From the NCBI GenBank assembly GCA_011109175.1, contig RDEW01000002.1, positions 1,718,111 to 1,782,110 on the forward strand: a stretch of DNA of 64,000 nucleotides, given 5' to 3'. The stretch comes from Dicyema japonicum. Its lineage: Eukaryota > Animalia > Dicyemida. The translations under genes and the position numbers were made by a program. The notes beneath the pieces were generated by a model, which made no database searches, was not told where the DNA came from, and saw nothing but the letters and a program-made list of their open reading frames with translations. Of the stretch, positions 8,975 to 25,150 are shown one piece after another. Within the stretch, counting starts at the first letter, position 1, and each line of letters begins with the position of its first letter.

Positions 8975-11115
8975 GGAGATTAAGGGCTAGGCGTACCTCT
9001 ATTACGCAAAATATCTACTTAGCTTCATGGTGGATGAACGCCTTGTATTCTCGTGAGCACGTAAGAAGTGACAGACTTAGGAGACATCAGAAACCAAAGA
9101 AGTGTCGGGTGCACAATTCCACATTCTAATCTCTCCCAAATATAGCTCAAAGGAGCATCTATCCGCATCTGCAAGTGATAGTTAATATACGTTGCCAGTA
9201 TCAAGCTTATCAGCTAATTTAGAGTATCTTTATTCCCAAAAGAACAATTATCCAACTTATTAGTACCCATAATCTATCTCGCAGAGCTTTGTGTTTCGAA
9301 TCTGTATATCTGGTATACAATGGATTTCCATTATGTGTTCCTCTGTTTAGTTGGTACTCACCAATGTAGTATTCGTTTATCCAATCGGATTTGATATCTC
9401 AGACATATGCTTGAGAGAAAGTTTAGTTCATATTTTTGATATTCGCTAGTTTCCCCTCATATTTTTCACACTCTTTAAGCCTTCTGGCTAAATGTAACTT
9501 CTGATGACATCGGATCTGAAGGTCGTGGGTTCAAATCCGAACGATAGAGTTTTCAGCGAAGGTCAATTCTTGTCAAACAGATCCCACCCGTGAGGCGACG
9601 AGTCCTTCTGGCACGACACAGTTGTTAAAAGGGATCTTCCTAATTTTCCCCCTGACCAAACCCTCTAATGAAGATTGCATTATGAAAACTATTAGGACGT
9701 GGGACAAAATTGGAAGAGGGCTGACCTACTTCTCCACCTCTCCCCTGAAGCGGAAGCCTGTAATGAAGTATTGGAAAATGGATTTGGTCAGCACAAGCAG
9801 ATGCTCTCCCTTTGGTTCCTTCCTTGGATTAGTTATGACTGTTTGTGCTGGAATTACAATGGTAAGCCTGGGGTTAATAATAATAATAACTCTCGTCTTT
9901 GATCTTCGGAACTTCTCGGTGTTGGCAAAATGAAGAAACACCTTGATCCAATACAATTAGAATGATCTACTTTATGGTGACTCTTACTATTGGATTCGGA
10001 GTCGTTCTAAAATAACCTCAAAAATATTTTGGAGGTAGATTCTGGATATAGTCAGGAGGGTGAGGATCATGTCTACTCTGGATTCTAACATTCAATATGG
10101 GGTAACATTCAATAAGGCAATCATTTTTTGTTATATTCCCATTTCTAATATGTGCACATCCACCGGTGTGACTGGGAAGGTGGTAACATTTATCAGAGTC
10201 GATCAATTCTGAATTGGAGTACTAAATTTACTGGTTACTATTCTCAATGTCAGTGAAGTCCGGAATCTTCAACCGGAGATTCTTGAACAGATTGTGTTCG
10301 CTTTTGCGTGAAAAACCGAGTAGTTGAAAATGGCATAGCATTTCCCCTCACTGCATCTCTGGGGACCTAATTTTACTCAGAAGACAAACGATCATTTATC
10401 ACGTACAAACAGTGCCAGCTTTCTCTGTCAAATTGAACGATTTTTCCTATCGTTTCTATTGAATAATTGTTATTTTGAATTCCAGGACTTTATATAAGAA
10501 CCCACGTTACCCGATAGATGTAAAGACCGGGGACATTATGCATTTTTCGCAACCGGTAACGTGTCCGTATCCAAGCAGGTGGAGCAGTTCGTGGACTAGA
10601 ATAATTGCAGTCTGTTGCAACTCGAGGTTTGTCTAAAATAAGGTCGATTTGTCACTTCATATGACATATATATGACAACTGTCCCATGTGGTATGCAAAC
10701 TGCCTTAACAACGCGTATCCGAGAGTAACAAATCCTGAATCATTCAAAACATGTTGAGATCTACGGATTAGAAAACTACAGTCTACGTGAAAAACACGTA
10801 TGCGTCATAATTCTTTTGTATCTCATTTTGGTCGACTGCCAAAAGACTTGAAGTCTACTTTTCTGCCATCGACTAGGACAATTTCTTTAATAACGACGTT
10901 CATTTCGAACGTTTCAAAATACTTTTAGTTGACTATAAGACTACTTGATGGTTTCATTCACAAAGTCAAATGTCCGCATGACCGTAGTTATCGAAGACTT
11001 CCAAGTATATGCTAAGACGTGATTATACCAGAAGGCGGTTAATATAGGCTTCCTATTCTAAGGTTTTCTTTTGACAGCTTATAAAAGTCAACAAGAAAAT
11101 GAGGAGAGAATTCAT
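8975..11115 (-). CDS. Secreted reprolysin/ADAM-type (M12B) zinc metalloprotease fused to C-type lectin domains; spliced, SINE-interrupted, several frame disruptions
   Basis: ATG 11115 MNSLLIFLLTFISC (signal-like); YDAYVFFT...TLGYA..KAVCIPHG; 23-nt intron 10655-10633; TAIILVHELLHLLGYGHVTGCEKCIMSP (HExxHxxGxxH at 10593-10561 plus Met-turn); CTLD-like CSEGKCYAIFNYSVFHAKANTICSRISG...GGCAHIRNGNITKNDC; second CTLD NCIGSRCFFILPTPRSSEDQRRECEKYEGKLANIKN...DRCSFELYLGEIRMWNC...VCHF. Confidence 0.75.
9475..9888 (+). mobile_element. tRNA-derived SINE
   Basis: A-box-like TGGCTAAATG, B box GGTTCAAATCC, (TAA)n tail, ACTCT target-site duplication at 9470-9474 and 9889-9893. Confidence 0.8.
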
Positions 11116-11539
11116 TAATTTTCTCAGAATATGTTGTTGAAATTTATTGTAAGTTTCTGGTTTTTTAATTAAAAATAAAATTAACTAAAAAACTTCTAAT
11201 TTGCTAGAAAATCATAAAATTTTTAAAAAACAGAAAAAATCTATGAATTATTAGATTTTTATCAATAAAGTCAAAATTTATATGTTCTTTAAAATAGTCT
11301 AAAACTATAAAAATGTGATTTTTAATCAAAATATTATATAAATCAAAAGTTATAAAGTAAAAAGTCAAAATTTTGGAATGTCAAAAAGGTCAAAATTTAA
11401 TTTTTTAGGTCAGTAAAGTCAAAGTTTATTGATTTTTGATTTTTTATTTCTTAGAGTTTTTGAATAAAATACTAGCGTGTCATCAACTGTTATGCCGCAT
11501 TCAAATCAGGAAAGTCGTTGAAAAGATTAAGACTGTTAT

Positions 11540-11960
11540 TAGAAAATATCCTTGTGAATTTTTTATCAACTCTCGAATTTTCACAACAACATCTTTTTAT
11601 TGAGTCTTTTGTCTAAGAAACATTTCAAACTAACGAGTTTATCATTTTTATTAGCATTTCACAAATGCTACTGTAAAAATATTTGATTTCCTCATTCTAT
11701 TCGCTGACTCTACGATCAATGAGGTCACTAGTGCTTAGTCGAATTTGATTTTCCTTGCAATAAGTTGAACAGTAAATTTCACAAAACGTGTTTGAGGATA
11801 CCGTTTCAGTTACTTCTATGTAAAAGTGTAGAAAATTTATGCAAAGGTACTTACCGAAGATATTTTTGAGTTTTTTAAATGCATTTATTATAGATTTAGA
11901 AAAGTTGGTTTGATCTAAGGAATCCATATAAATATATTTGAATACACTAATAAATTTCTT
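11540..11960 (-). repeat. Dispersed unclassified repeat with coding-like remnant (copies at 13740-13920 plus 14663-14750, and 32540-32720)
   Basis: Shared tttccttgcataagttgaacagtaaa and aaaagtgtagaaaatttatgc blocks; minus strand reads SNTFCEIYCSTYCKENQIRLSTSDL. Confidence 0.6.
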
Positions 11961-12049
11961 GCATATTTTTAGTAAAAAACACTCCAGAGAAAACATAAAA
12001 TTAGTTTAGTTTCCCTTGTGCCGTATTCCTAATCATCCTCTACGTCAGC

Positions 12050-13923: not shown

Positions 13924-14660
13924 CCGTATTTGCCGGTGTATAAGTAGACTTTTTTCGATCAAAAATTGACCTAAAAATGACCTCGACTTATACACTGAGT
14001 CATGAAATTCAACTTTGTATTCATCGCTTCGAATGTGATGGTAATTACTACACTCTTCACAAAAATTTCTTGCAAAGATCAATCTAATTATAGAAGTGAA
14101 TGGAATAAAATAATAACCTCGTAAACCCATGTCTAAACGAATGAATTACTCTGCCAAGTTCAAACTGCAAGTTGTAAACTTTGCCAAAGAAACTAACAAC
14201 TGTGCTGCCTAAAGAAAGTTGGCGAAATGAGAAACTAGTAAGAGATTGGAACGCATTGCAACACAGCAGCAGTGATGCCAAGAAACAAATGTGCTAATAG
14301 AGGGAAAAGCTGCCATTGGCCAGCACTTGAACAAGAACTTGTATGCTGGGTCGAGGAGCAACGAAAGTGTGGGTTCGTCGTCACAAGAAATATGATTCGT
14401 CTGCGAGCTTTGGTTTGTGCCAAACAAAGCAAGATTACCGATTTCAAAGAAACTATAAGTTGGTGTTCACGATTTTTAAAGAGAAATGACCTTGTGCACG
14501 ACAAAGAACTAAACTTGCTCAGAAACTCACTCAAAAAAAGTGAGGAAAAGATAACTCTCATTCCAAAAAAAGTGTTCATTGCTGTTAGTCTCTCTCGGCG
14601 CGTAATATCAAGGGTTACAAAGTAAATAGTAGGGGTCGACTTATCCACCGGCAAATGCGG
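13924..14660 (+). mobile_element. Internally deleted pogo (POGK-like) transposon
   Basis: TIRs CCGTATTTGCCGGTGTATAAGT / ACTTATCCACCGGCAAATGCGG with TA TSD; Brinker-like MSKRMNYSAKFKLQVVNFAKE plus CENP-B HTH WPALEQELVCWVEEQR...WCSRFLKRNDL; no DDE domain. Confidence 0.9.
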
Positions 14661-22845: not shown

Positions 22846-25150
22846 TTAGAAGTCATCGTCTACAAAAATTAAAATATACGACCTCTTGGCTGAAGTCGCA
22901 ATAATTTTTGAATGTTGTCGTATTTTTCTAAAATTTGATTAACTAAAATAAAACTTTTTATAAAAAAGAGACCAAGTGAAACAACAACACCAACAATTGC
23001 GAAAAAGATGCCGACGCCCAAAGCAGTGCTCTTTTTAGATGAACCTATACGTCGGGAAAATAAACTACTACCAGGCAATGAAGATGAAGAATACGGAGAA
23101 TCTATGAATATGAAGTAATTAATTTACGATATCCAACACAGACTGCTATGTGTTCTTCTCTACATCTCGTGGCAATCCATGATCCGTTATGAGAGACAGT
23201 AATGCAAACAATTTCATCATCATTATGGTTGGCTCGTTGGGAGCCCATGGAGTACTTTCCTAATAATAAAGATTAAAAACCGGTTTATCCCCAATCCACG
23301 TGAGAGTGGTATCATTCACAAAATTCTATAGTCCATGAAAAACCGTCCATTTTTTATTTCTAGAATAATGATTGTGATCACTTTGATTGAGTTTATTTAC
23401 GATATTCTTATCATCCGTCTTTATCATCGAGAGGCCAAACTGAGAACAGAGTCTTGAAGAATCGTGATAAGATAACGATCTCCCAAACATTGTGTAGATT
23501 TTTGAATATATTTTAATTGAAGCAGTCTTATTTTCCAAGTCTAAAAAGTTACTAACAATTATACGCCAAAAATTATTTGTGCAGTTAATATTGGAGTAAT
23601 TATCTAGAATAAATAAAAAATAAAACAATTATTATCATTTTTGTAACAAATGAATCTAGTCTTGTGACATTTATCGTTAATCCATTTTCCTGAAGCATAT
23701 TGAGCATAAACACATCCATATTTTTGTGGTTCCATGGGATAGCCTCTGTCCCAGTTTGTAAAATTCTATAAATGTATGTAAAAAAACTACTGTTTTGAGC
23801 TTATCTCCTCTCATGAGCACGCCATCAATGTAGATTGATCCAAAGTAAATTCCAATATCAAATTCGACATTCTCTATGACTTAATTTTTATTAAGACCAA
23901 TAACAGCACAGTTTTCCACAGGATTAAACGGAGCATAGAGGACCGCATTTCTCATGGCACAAACACTCACGGCCTCTTCCCGAGTAGACAAGAAGTCAAA
24001 TACATAAAATGAATTGTTCTGGAAATAAAATATCTGAGAAAAATAGTCTAAAATTAATTGTTGGATTATACGGAATTTATTTTTTTCACTACAGTCCTTT
24101 GGAGTTGCCCCATTAATAACAGAATCTATTTTTTGTATTAAAAATACCAGTTTCACAAATAATATGTGCGGATTCTGAACAGTCAATGGTGGAAAATTCT
24201 CCATTAGTGGAATCACGAACGACGCATTCCTTATCAATGAGATTGAGTGAAGTCCACGGTAGGTATGACTAAAATATTTAACTCCTAAAAACCGCTAAAT
24301 AATTTTTTTCTGTCATATAATTATTGCTTTCGTTCGTGTGATCCCGACGAAAGATCGGGAAAATACTAACTCTAAAATGGTTGTATATTAACATATTACC
24401 GTGAATAGCACAGTTTTCTGTTCCATCGTTTGGATGAAAATATATCCGTTGTGATCGTATTTGCAAATTCGTTTTGTTGTCGCATAGTCCTTGGGGAAAT
24501 TATAAATGTAATATGTGTGTCCTCTGAAGGTCACCATACTGTCGTAGGGTACTAAACTTGTAATTTATCGAAAACTGTTGATCTGCTTTCCGTAAGTTAT
24601 ATTGATTCCAGTTGAATGGATATCATCTATTTTGATACTTATTACTACCAGATTCGCAAATCCAGTATTTCAAATCATGTTCATTTGTAATTTTCCACTT
24701 GCCAGAACTTGCTATCATTGTTACTCCCTTCCAATCTTTATGTATTGTAATATCTGAATCAAAATTAAAGTAAGTCTATATAAAATGCAATATTACAATC
24801 AGATTAAAAAATCGAGAATTAACAAATACAGTTGATCCTTCCTTTAGTCTCTCCACTCCAATCGACTTGTCTCTGATAATAAGACCTAAGATTCCATCAA
24901 AGAGTAACTAGCTATTAAGTCATTTTCTTTTTGATCTTGTATGTCGACAGCATAAAATTCACCATTAAATGAAAACATACATTCATAAAATATATCAGAC
25001 ACTTGTTTATACATATCTGAAGAAGTGTATGAATGACCATTCCAATTATATACAGATCCATAAGTAGACACTTTTCCGGAACATTGATTCGTCAGTACAA
25101 GTACTAAATTATATCATAACTTTACTGATTAATGCCCAAAGATCAAACAT
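22846..25150 (-). CDS. Type-I membrane receptor with four C-type lectin-like domains, copy A
   Basis: Spliced: MFDLWALIILVLTNQCSG signal (22-nt intron 25125-25104); CTLD1 ...GKWKITNEHDLKYWICE; CTLD2 ...ECVVRDSTNGEFSTIDCSESAHIICE; CTLD3 FTNWDRGYPMEPQKYGCVYAQYASGKWINDKCHKTRFICY; CTLD4 PWAPNEP..NDDEIVCITVSHNGSWIATRCREEHIAVC; Ser-rich stalk; TM ALGVGIFFAIVGVVVSLGLFFI; short tail. More than 10 introns, nearly all 21-28 nt. At least three 1-nt deletions relative to copy B. Confidence 0.85.

Follow-up and report, generated by a model that had tools for sequence, protein, structure and literature searches.

A probable decayed copy of a Dicyema-specific gene joining a prodomain-less M12B protease to lectin-like units

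Introduction

The ADAM, adamalysin and SVMP proteins (MEROPS M12B, PF01421) are characterized by an HExxHxxGxxH zinc site, continued by Asp in the consensus (HExxHxxGxxHD), and by a downstream Met-turn; a prodomain of ~200 aa with a cysteine switch and the disintegrin and Cys-rich domains belong to the described architecture (PMC4885070). In the P-IIId SVMPs (RVV-X, multactivase) the M12B protease is accompanied by C-type-lectin-like modules, which serve as a substrate-recognition exosite and not as sugar binders (PMC4885070). The closest relatives of the gene described here are found in its own genome, that of Dicyema japonicum, where minimal reprolysins of ~235-253 aa occupy at least 35 loci and consist of a signal peptide, a catalytic domain, an acidic linker and a hydrophobic C-terminal tail.

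D. japonicum is a parasite of octopus, and its introns are ~20-26 nt long. The published assembly, built with PacBio scaffolding and gap closing, comprises 67.5 Mb in 377 scaffolds at a heterozygosity of 1.24% (PMC6736024); the assembly analysed here holds 67,542,437 bases in 377 contigs. The window, that is the whole stretch of DNA analysed (64,000 nucleotides of contig RDEW01000002.1), contains a locus that is very probably a dead copy of a once-translated, diversifying, Dicyema-specific protease-lectin-like gene, since decayed.

Organization of the locus

The gene copy is located on the minus strand at 11115-9214. Its ATG (11115-11113) opens a hydrophobic start, signal-peptide-like by inspection (MNSLLIFLLTFISC), which is directly followed by the catalytic core and, downstream of the protease, by two units that contain Cys and whose N-terminal pattern is CTLD-like. 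The stop codon of the family aligns at ~9214 of the window, so the membership of 9213-8975 in the gene is unsupported. The exon map was drawn from the conserved 20-26 nt family introns and by comparing each exon with intact natural counterparts from the paralogs; it is tentative for the linker (exons 9-10). The features are as follows.

11029..11115, minus strand: exon 1, with the ATG, the signal-peptide-like start and the first catalytic-domain strand; nonsense codon TAG at 11055-11053
11005..11028, minus strand: micro-intron 1, 24 nt in paralogs; 3' splice site changed from AG to AC at 11006-11005
10945..11004, minus strand: exon 2; deletions of 8 nt (~10983) and 1 nt (~10949) relative to the intact exon of paralog C322
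10944-10922, minus strand: conserved intron between exons 2 and 3, 23 nt
10787..10921, minus strand: exon 3; 14-nt deletion at ~10836 causing a frameshift
10786-10761, minus strand: intron between exons 3 and 4, 26 nt, placed and phased like its counterpart in the minimal paralogs
10656..10760, minus strand: exon 4; 1-nt deletion at ~10710
10511..10632, minus strand: exon 5 (active site), intact, a single open exon with zinc motif and Met-turn
10593-10561, minus strand: HELLHLLGYGH zinc motif, in exon 5
10542-10534, minus strand: CIM Met-turn, in exon 5
10377..10487, minus strand: exon 6, intact, end of the catalytic domain, with a W-H-C-L-Y segment common to the minimal paralogs
10376-10357, minus strand: conserved intron between exons 6 and 7, 20 nt, the in-frame junction of protease and lectin-like part
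10232..10356, minus strand: exon 7, N-terminal half of CTLD-like unit 1; TGA and deletions of 1 nt and 5 nt (~10263, ~10247)
10098..10208, minus strand: exon 8, C-terminal half of CTLD-like unit 1; terminal deletion
10028..10084, minus strand: exon 9, linker; 1-nt deletion at ~10081
9214..10006, minus strand: exons 10-11, CTLD-like unit 2 and the family stop codon, split by a repeat insertion
9475..9888, plus strand: SINE-like interspersed repeat, 414 bp, inside unit 2; absent from 6 of 6 paralogs

Altogether, the window copy carries two nonsense codons, 12 or more deletions that shift the frame (exons 2, 3, 4, 7, 8, 9 and 10-11), lost or mutated splice sites and the 414-bp insertion. Codon 21 is TAG where the paralogs have Leu, and translation from the ATG would halt after 20 codons; in exon 7 the TGA (10271-10269) takes the place of a conserved Trp. 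The deletion at the end of exon 8 covers 10 nt of exon (19 alignment columns in total), and removes the final Cys codon together with the 5' splice site that follows it; exons 10-11 contain deletions of 1, 4, 5 and 2 nt at ~9987, ~9430, ~9393 and ~9285, respectively. Removal of the conserved introns did not yield a continuous coding sequence in the window copy. Since the stops, frameshifts, splice-site losses and insertion remain after this step, the continuous protein of the initial annotation is a conceptual repair. The signal-peptide-like start, the HELLHLLGYGH motif and the CIM turn of the secreted protease proposed there are real features of a broken copy. Judged by its sequence, the locus is a decayed pseudogene and not a secreted enzyme, and its expression is presumably absent.

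Read-derived contigs are available for part of the locus. One is identical to the assembly over 10572-10782 and spans the 1-nt deletion in exon 4, another is identical over 9364-9502 and spans the 4- and 5-nt deletions together with the repeat junction, and a third spans 9239-9379 gap-free; exact-match contigs cover part of the lesion set and not each lesion. Because several indels recur in read-derived contigs, they are not assembly errors, contrary to the earlier suggestion that reads would correct the frameshifts. The contig over 10018-10429 disagrees with the assembly at 6 letters and 8 gap positions; exons 7-9 have a second haplotype, in which the set of indels differs.

Three ways of reading the DNA were tried and discarded. 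A prokaryote-style ORF reading of the window copy gave short pieces only, owing to the micro-introns and the real lesions. An alternative genetic code had been considered for in-frame stops at one conserved place in the paralogs; these stops sit within introns of 24-26 nt with GT..AG borders. Automatic models of the type 'longest ORF, any GT..AG intron' over-fitted the broken copies with invented introns and were used solely for the intact minimal paralogs, the exon-by-exon comparison replacing them elsewhere.

Protease domain

The motif HELLHLLGYGH of the window copy agrees with the HExxHxxGxxH consensus and, with the downstream Met-turn, resembles the site of ADAM, adamalysin and SVMP proteins. 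The residue after the third His is Val, not the consensus Asp, in the seven-copy subfamily as well as in the minimal paralogs. CIM lies 9 residues past the third His, whereas the C-L-M of the minimal paralogs is at +14, the Met-turn loop of the seven-copy family being 5 residues shorter. Exon 5 alone scored 12.8 bits against Pfam Reprolysin (cut-off 20.8), and a six-frame genome search with PF01421 missed the window locus. The Pfam check proposed in the initial annotation placed the minimal paralogs above the Reprolysin cut-off and the window exon below it, and gave no Lectin_C match to the two units.

The relationship was traced through the genome itself. In a genome-wide search the window exon matched its paralogs, with E values as low as 1.5e-19, and matched Pfam-positive minimal reprolysins with E values of ~1e-3. 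The spliced protein of C322 aligns with minimal paralogs from end to end of the catalytic domain (E 7e-11 to 4e-15 by phmmer, against a set of five sequences). The two groups are 28-31% identical over aligned catalytic stretches and have in common the position and phase of the intron after a D-A-x-V-F-F segment and a W-x-C-L segment downstream of the Met-turn. The protease is, on these grounds, classified as a very divergent M12B enzyme homologous to the at least 35 minimal reprolysin loci of D. japonicum. Sequence divergence from ADAM and SVMP proteins is extreme: among 1.84 billion proteins, phmmer with a paralog gave 2 matches at E < 1e-3, both weak and both ADAM-type proteins with Reprolysin, Disintegrin and ADAM_CR domains, and a homologous-protein search with a paralog ORF gave no match.

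The absence of a prodomain, already noted from the letters of the sequence, was confirmed. The first catalytic strand lies within ~15 residues of the signal peptide, and no candidate exon occurs in the 140 nt that separate the ATG (11115) from the edge of the upstream repeat (11254). The family thus lacks the ~200-aa prodomain and cysteine switch of ADAM and SVMP proteins, a feature shared with the minimal reprolysins. The disintegrin and Cys-rich domains are missing as well, as stated earlier, there being no Pfam match to Disintegrin or ADAM_CR in any piece.

Lectin-like units

In the place of the hydrophobic tail of the minimal reprolysins, the family has two compact CTLD-like modules. Their in-frame connection to the protease through the conserved 20-nt intron is supported for the ancestral family by comparison of the copies, and the proposed M12B-CTLD fusion may be retained in that sense; it does not apply to the window copy, which is apparently a pseudogene. 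To our knowledge, M12B and lectin-like domains are otherwise combined only as separate chains, in the P-IIId snake-venom enzymes.

The identity of the two units as CTLDs is moderately supported. Pfam Lectin_C (PF00059) did not match any exon or ORF of the family at E values up to 10, and a genome-wide six-frame Lectin_C search returned 74 matches, with none at the seven family loci and none in the window. The hhalign comparison with seven CTLDs of the same genome gave a probability of 81.8% (E 1.1e-5) for unit 2 and 36.5% (E 3.7e-4) for unit 1. In these alignments the pattern C-x-G-x-C-Y/F ... C ... L-A-x-I-E is in register, and both units finish in I-C-Q, as does the final CTLD strand. Lectin_C was the family of 91 of the 100 matches listed with protein-language features (score 0.91). 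The best PDB profile match of the lectin-like part, the macrophage mannose receptor, was not significant (E = 1.1). AlphaFold2 gave a pLDDT of 38 from the single sequence, and with an alignment including real CTLDs a low-confidence model (pLDDT 53, pTM 0.50), that alignment biasing the model toward the CTLD fold; with this biased model, all 50 of the Foldseek matches listed were CTLDs, at E 0.014 or weaker. The tandem CTLDs of the initial annotation therefore hold as a CTLD-like pattern with hhalign probabilities of 82% and 37%, and not as Lectin_C domains.

The units differ from Lectin_C CTLDs in their compactness. By inspection of the alignment with CTLDs of the same genome, the whole long-loop region, which contains the Ca2+/sugar site, is missing, and no EPN/QPD or WND motif was seen in either unit. 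Compact CTLD forms that lack the long-loop region exist, for instance the Link-type modules. Because the long-loop region and these motifs are absent, sugar targeting by the units appears unlikely, and so does the description as a glycan-targeted protease. The suggested pairing with CTLD receptors in the window found no link either. In functional terms the ancestral protein is best compared with the P-IIId SVMPs, which also combine M12B with lectin-like modules. Their modules are separate gene products on an M-D-C heavy chain, whereas those of the family stand in cis directly after the catalytic domain and are compact, without the long-loop region, and the window locus is dead.

The seven-copy family and past selection

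Seven dispersed copies (the window copy and six paralogs) were found, with 75-88% DNA identity. All six paralogs are broken, each by its own stops and frameshifts, and some lesions are common to subgroups of copies; several minimal paralogs, by contrast, look intact. C322 is the sole copy with an intact protease ORF: its exons 1-6 splice to 216 aa and end before the lectin-like part. The search for intact paralogs thus failed, none of the assembled copies keeping the full architecture of protease and two units. C124b and C335 are without 5' exons. The paralog introns are GT..AG and 24-26 nt long. In a genome-wide search the lectin-like exons matched the seven family copies only.

For the lectin-like exons, omega was 2.71 (against omega = 1, LRT 19.2, p = 1.2e-5), with broken codons treated as missing and pairwise tests sharing branches. 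Between C57 and C69 there are 38.5 nonsynonymous and 0.5 synonymous changes, off-frame controls for this pair giving 0.5-1.0, and exons have diverged 2-2.5 times as much as introns and 5' flank. The excess of nonsynonymous change and the fast exons indicate that the family was translated and diversifying before its decay. The introns between these variable exons are nearly identical among copies.

The ancestral product would have consisted of a signal peptide, a highly divergent reprolysin-type (M12B) zinc protease without prodomain, and two compact CTLD-like modules where the minimal reprolysins carry their tail. The gene was probably translated, with its lectin-like tail under diversifying selection, which would fit a secreted protein at the host interface; the tail may have acted as a protein-recognition exosite for the protease. 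The window copy would then have gained nonsense codons, frameshifts, splice-site losses and the repeat insertion, after which the protein could no longer be made.

Alternative explanations

That the gene is intact and functional, its stops and frameshifts being assembly errors or haplotype chimeras, is quite improbable. Repeated copies at 80-90% identity are a setting in which assemblers err, scaffolding with PacBio reads and gap closing was applied to a heterozygous genome (1.24%), indels are frequent relative to substitutions among close copies, and the contig over 10018-10429 shows 8 gap positions against the assembly. However, two lesions are substitutions to stop codons and one is a splice-acceptor substitution, the 414-bp repeat lies within an exon with its junction in an exact read-derived contig, and three further contigs recover four indels. 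The six paralogs are also broken, each in its own way, with subgroup-shared lesions as expected of inherited mutations. An origin of the motif and ORF pieces by chance resemblance in repeat-rich DNA can be considered negligible: it would agree with the score of the window exon below the Pfam cut-off (12.8 against 20.8 bits) and with the failure of the six-frame PF01421 search at this locus, but not with E values of 1.5e-19 against paralogs and ~1e-3 against minimal reprolysins, the alignment of spliced C322 over the full catalytic domain, the intron position and phase in common with minimal paralogs, or a selection signal specific to the assigned frame.

A different origin of the seven copies deserves more weight, although it too is rather unlikely. 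They may have been dead on arrival. In this view each would be a snapshot of a single, rapidly evolving master gene, the functional master being C322 or a copy that the assembly lacks, and would have been duplicated along with the repeats around it, through transduction by a transposon or segmental duplication driven by repeats. This reading concerns origin and is compatible with the pseudogene explanation. The same flanking repeats at all copies with differing upstream starts, the lack of 5' exons in C124b and C335, and the location of C322 15-30 kb from other reprolysin loci would suit it, and nonsynonymous-only differences beside near-identical introns fit the sampling of a selected master gene. 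All micro-introns are kept, which argues against an RNA intermediate, reverse transcriptase and endonuclease in the flanking ORFs are unconfirmed by Pfam, and the apparent common 3' end reflects only the point at which the window copy itself diverges. Very improbable is the proposal that the broken copies are silent donor cassettes from which gene conversion introduces variation into an expressed protease-lectin gene, as in antigenic variation. Exons that vary while the micro-introns and flanks around them hardly do, differences that almost all change amino acids, and many broken copies beside at most one partly intact copy would be expected from it; yet the assembly contains no full-length recipient gene, and large deletions and repeat insertions are those of plain decay. 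An archive of hyper-diversified lectin-like cassettes that feed, by gene conversion, an expressed protease-lectin surface gene at the octopus-kidney interface, or in a milder form intact full-length M12B-CTLD alleles segregating in the species and missing from the reference, is a similarly improbable extension.

Significance

For the window locus the result is a correction: a pseudogene should be neither annotated nor pursued as an effector. For Dicyema it reveals that M12B proteases without a prodomain form a large set of extreme divergence, with at least 35 loci in a genome of 5,012 predicted genes; this set is not mentioned in the main text and text supplements of the D. japonicum genome paper. 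In one offshoot the protease was apparently fused in cis to two compact CTLD-like modules; the lectin-like part shows strong signs of diversifying selection, and wholesale decay came afterwards, a birth-and-death pattern. Such a pattern is typical of host-interface genes, and almost no host-interaction molecules of dicyemids are known to us.

Repeats and flanking sequences

The repeat at 9475-9888 has an (AAT)n end, its candidate copies number more than 1000 across the genome, and the read depth over it is 35 to 200 times that of its flanks. It appeared tRNA-like by eye, without a tRNA match in Rfam or ARAGORN, which also gave no RNA gene in the window. A 'common 3' end of all copies' was considered as a mark of retrotransposition and rejected, as it merely reflects where the window query copy itself diverges. 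Neither a motif at 12477-12292 that resembles reverse transcriptase by eye nor a downstream endonuclease-like piece was confirmed by Pfam. Flanking repeats common to all copies comprise ~700 bp upstream (11254-11965 in the window), with start points that differ among copies, and downstream repeat remnants. Among the flanking ORFs, the sole Pfam match is HTH_Tnp_Tc5, at 14272-14625.

Gene layout and lesions of the window copy

The feature at 8975-11115 runs on the minus strand of an AT-rich window in which the open reading frames are all short. Exons 1-6 encode the protease and the lectin-like part, made up of two units, begins at exon 7. Lesions were called by comparing each exon with a natural intact paralog exon, without joining or mending; a broken codon counted as missing.

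Features and lesions of the window copy
11115-11113, minus: ATG of a signal-peptide-like hydrophobic start
11055-11053: exon 1, TAG at codon 21
11006-11005: intron 1, AC in place of the acceptor AG
exon 2: two deletions (8 nt, 1 nt)
exon 3: deletion of 14 nt
exon 4: deletion of 1 nt
10632-10511, minus: active-site exon, HELLHLLGYGH, then C-I-M nine residues on
10271-10269: exon 7, TGA in place of a conserved Trp; further deletions of 1 nt and 5 nt in this exon
end of exon 8: deletion of 10 nt of the exon (19 alignment columns altogether), which takes away the last Cys codon and the donor site that follows
exons 9-11: deletions of 1, 1, 4, 5 and 2 nt
9475-9888: 414-bp insertion in unit 2, present in none of the paralogs

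Exons 5 and 6 are the sole undamaged exons, which is why the motif drew attention in the initial annotation. In exons 1-3, checked manually in the sequence, no alternative splice choice rescues the frame. The locus is unable to encode the protein and is very probably a pseudogene. The initial description is partly confirmed, as to motif and layout but not as an intact gene; the proposed protease-lectin fusion is supported for the ancestor, but not for this probable pseudogene.

Introns of less than 30 bp occur in few animals, among them D. japonicum (PMC13644364). An apparent pair of in-frame stops in the distant paralogs falls within a 24-nt GT..CTAAT..AG intron, so that frame changes in this genome may be micro-introns and have to be told from true damage. 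Alignment of the seven close copies revealed conserved micro-introns of 20-26 nt with GT/AG ends, one of them at the same position and phase as an intron in the distant paralogs.

The published assembly, built on short reads, comprises 67.5 Mb in 377 scaffolds, with 36.7% GC, 49% repeats and 1.24% heterozygosity (PMC6736024). Contigs were rebuilt from public runs, the source of which is probably the sample behind that assembly. One read-derived contig is identical to 10572-10782, spanning the 1-nt deletion of exon 4; another is identical to 9364-9502, spanning the junction of the repeat as well as the 4-nt and 5-nt deletions, and a further one spans 9239-9379 gap-free. The listed variants include no indel within the gene. 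Assembly error does not explain the damage. At 10018-10429 a 420-nt read-derived contig, present in two runs, shows 6 letter differences and 8 gap positions relative to the assembly, and therefore represents either another haplotype for exons 7-9 or a very close unassembled copy.

Other copies of the family

A search of the genome (67,542,437 bases, 377 contigs) with the active-site exon matched six close copies, on contigs C322, C57, C69, C335 and twice on C124 (C124a, C124b), and many more-distant metalloprotease loci. Amino-acid identity is 59-88% for the four close copies retaining this exon. All six paralogs are broken, with lesions that differ copy by copy.

State of the paralogs
C57: stop in exon 2, frameshifts in exons 3-5, lectin-like exons nearly intact
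C69 and C124a: common TAA in exon 1 and common 2-nt deletion in exon 3
C69, C124a, C124b and C335: common TAA between the lectin-like units
C124b and C335: without 5' exons
C322: exons 1-6 intact, lectin-like part decayed

Exons 1-6 of C322 join through canonical splice sites into a 216-aa ORF without interruption, which covers signal peptide and protease and is located at about 3170-2400 on the minus strand of L015, the excised stretch around this copy (G000:C322:383500-389500). The ORF stops after exon 6 because the donor there is CT, not GT. Other reprolysin loci lie 15-30 kb away. This paralog is possibly the lone functional survivor, as a protease-only protein. The lectin-like exons have no genome match beyond the seven close copies; they are confined to broken copies, and the full architecture is therefore found in no assembled gene. 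It is an unusual M12B variant, known here from broken copies only. In the C335 copy the protease exons are split by an insertion with long ORFs and, by eye, a YADD-type reverse-transcriptase motif (about 1667-2429 of the excised stretch L005, G000:C335:205626-208736).

Protease domain

The active-site exon of the window alone scores 12.8 bits against Pfam Reprolysin (cut-off 20.8); distant paralogs exceed the cut-off. The spliced C322 protein aligns with these over the entire catalytic domain with 28-31% identity and, by phmmer in a five-sequence set, E of 7e-11 to 4e-15. A paralog search of 1.84 billion proteins yielded just two matches outside the genome, both ADAM-type, at E about 6e-4. The family carries Val, not Asp, after the third His, and its Met-turn loop is short. 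Because of the Pfam-positive paralogs, the C322 alignment and the ADAM-type outside matches, the family is classified by sequence comparison as M12B, though extremely divergent.

The distant reprolysins of this genome include minimal paralogs of about 235-253 aa, which in the modelled members consist of a signal peptide, the catalytic domain, an acidic linker and a hydrophobic tail, possibly an anchor of the membrane or GPI type. They likewise have no prodomain, and its absence, noted initially for the window gene, is true of the whole family. The genome-wide six-frame search with Pfam Reprolysin gave at least 35 matches, 34 of them above the cut-off.

Clusters of Reprolysin matches
C329:177-260 kb
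C322:73-371 kb
C327:80-242 kb
C312:608-700 kb
C212:444-505 kb
C7:17-49 kb
C246:175-182 kb

The D. japonicum genome has 5,012 predicted genes; metalloproteases are mentioned neither in the main text of the genome paper nor in its supplementary files in text form.

Lectin-like units

Pfam Lectin_C does not match the lectin-like units at E up to 10. In a six-frame search the same profile hit 74 places genome-wide. The seven loci were not among them and neither, at E up to 1, was any part of the window, including 22846-25150, where copies of a 'four-CTLD receptor' had been annotated. Remote tests for a C-type lectin domain (CTLD) are positive but weak. Compared with seven real CTLDs of this genome by hhalign, unit 2 reached a probability of 81.8% and unit 1 one of 36.5%, the register being the same; with language-model features, 91 of 100 matches were Lectin_C clusters, and in a PDB profile search the mannose receptor was best (E = 1.1). 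AlphaFold2 models are of low confidence, with pLDDT 38 from the single sequence and 53 from an alignment including real CTLDs. All 50 Foldseek matches listed for the second model are CTLDs (E 0.014 or weaker), a result biased by the real CTLDs in its alignment. Both units are compact in alignment, keeping both helices and the closing I-C-Q strand, and the long-loop region for Ca2+/sugar binding is absent. Unit 2 is probably a CTLD relative, the same assignment is somewhat favored for unit 1, and sugar binding is unlikely. The initial reading of an M12B protease with two lectin domains stands as to the divergent protease and the ancestral frame that joins the parts, but the window copy is broken and the CTLD identity is moderately supported.

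D. japonicum, a dicyemid, lives as a parasite in octopus kidneys. The ancestral product would have been secreted and its enzyme active without a prodomain latch, and the lectin-like modules may have been an exosite that recognised proteins of the host or its urine, in parallel to P-IIId snake-venom enzymes, whose lectin-like chains serve likewise (PMC4885070).

Selection before decay

In the assigned frame the differences between copies are nearly all amino-acid-changing. In the lectin-like exons, nonsynonymous changes between C57 and C69 number 38.5 and synonymous ones 0.5 (p = 1.7e-4); read in the two other frames, these columns yield ratios of 0.5-0.7. Between C57 and C335 all 36 changed codons are nonsynonymous, and the intervening introns differ at 1 of 86 positions. 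Under a codon model the lectin-like region has omega = 2.71 (LRT 19.2 against omega = 1, p = 1.2e-5) and the protease region omega = 1.53 (p = 0.058). Among the window copy, C322 and C57, exon divergence is 2-2.5 times that of introns plus 5' flank (p 1e-3 to 3e-7). The frame-specific nonsynonymous excess shows a genuine frame and past translation of the genes. The ancestral frame joined the protease to the lectin-like units, and selection acted on it. The family shows diversifying selection, whose target was the lectin-like tail prior to the decay of the copies. In an alternative reading, they would have been sampled at different times from one selected master gene.

Flanking repeats and dispersal

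Flanking repeats are common to all gene copies, with varying upstream start points. Dispersal via an RNA intermediate is made less likely by the introns, which the copies keep, and by Pfam, which confirmed no transposon enzymes in the flanks.

The insertion at 9475-9888 is a high-copy interspersed repeat, with first-look candidates that number more than 1000 genome-wide, full-length copies of 80-89% identity and a read depth 35 to 200 times that of its flanks. It is about 0.42 kb long, has an (AAT)n end and contains a stretch that resembles a tRNA T-arm by eye; neither Rfam nor ARAGORN found a tRNA match in it. Directly upstream of the gene, 11254-11965 is a dispersed repeat about 700 bp long, which lies beside most gene copies and occurs in at least 30 other genomic places at 78-88% identity. 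Further upstream, 12477-12292 (minus strand) carries a reverse-transcriptase-like motif by eye, unconfirmed by Pfam. An ORF at 14272-14625 (plus strand) encodes HTH_Tnp_Tc5, the Tc5-transposase DNA-binding domain (E = 2.5e-11), and is a pogo/Tigger-type transposon remnant.
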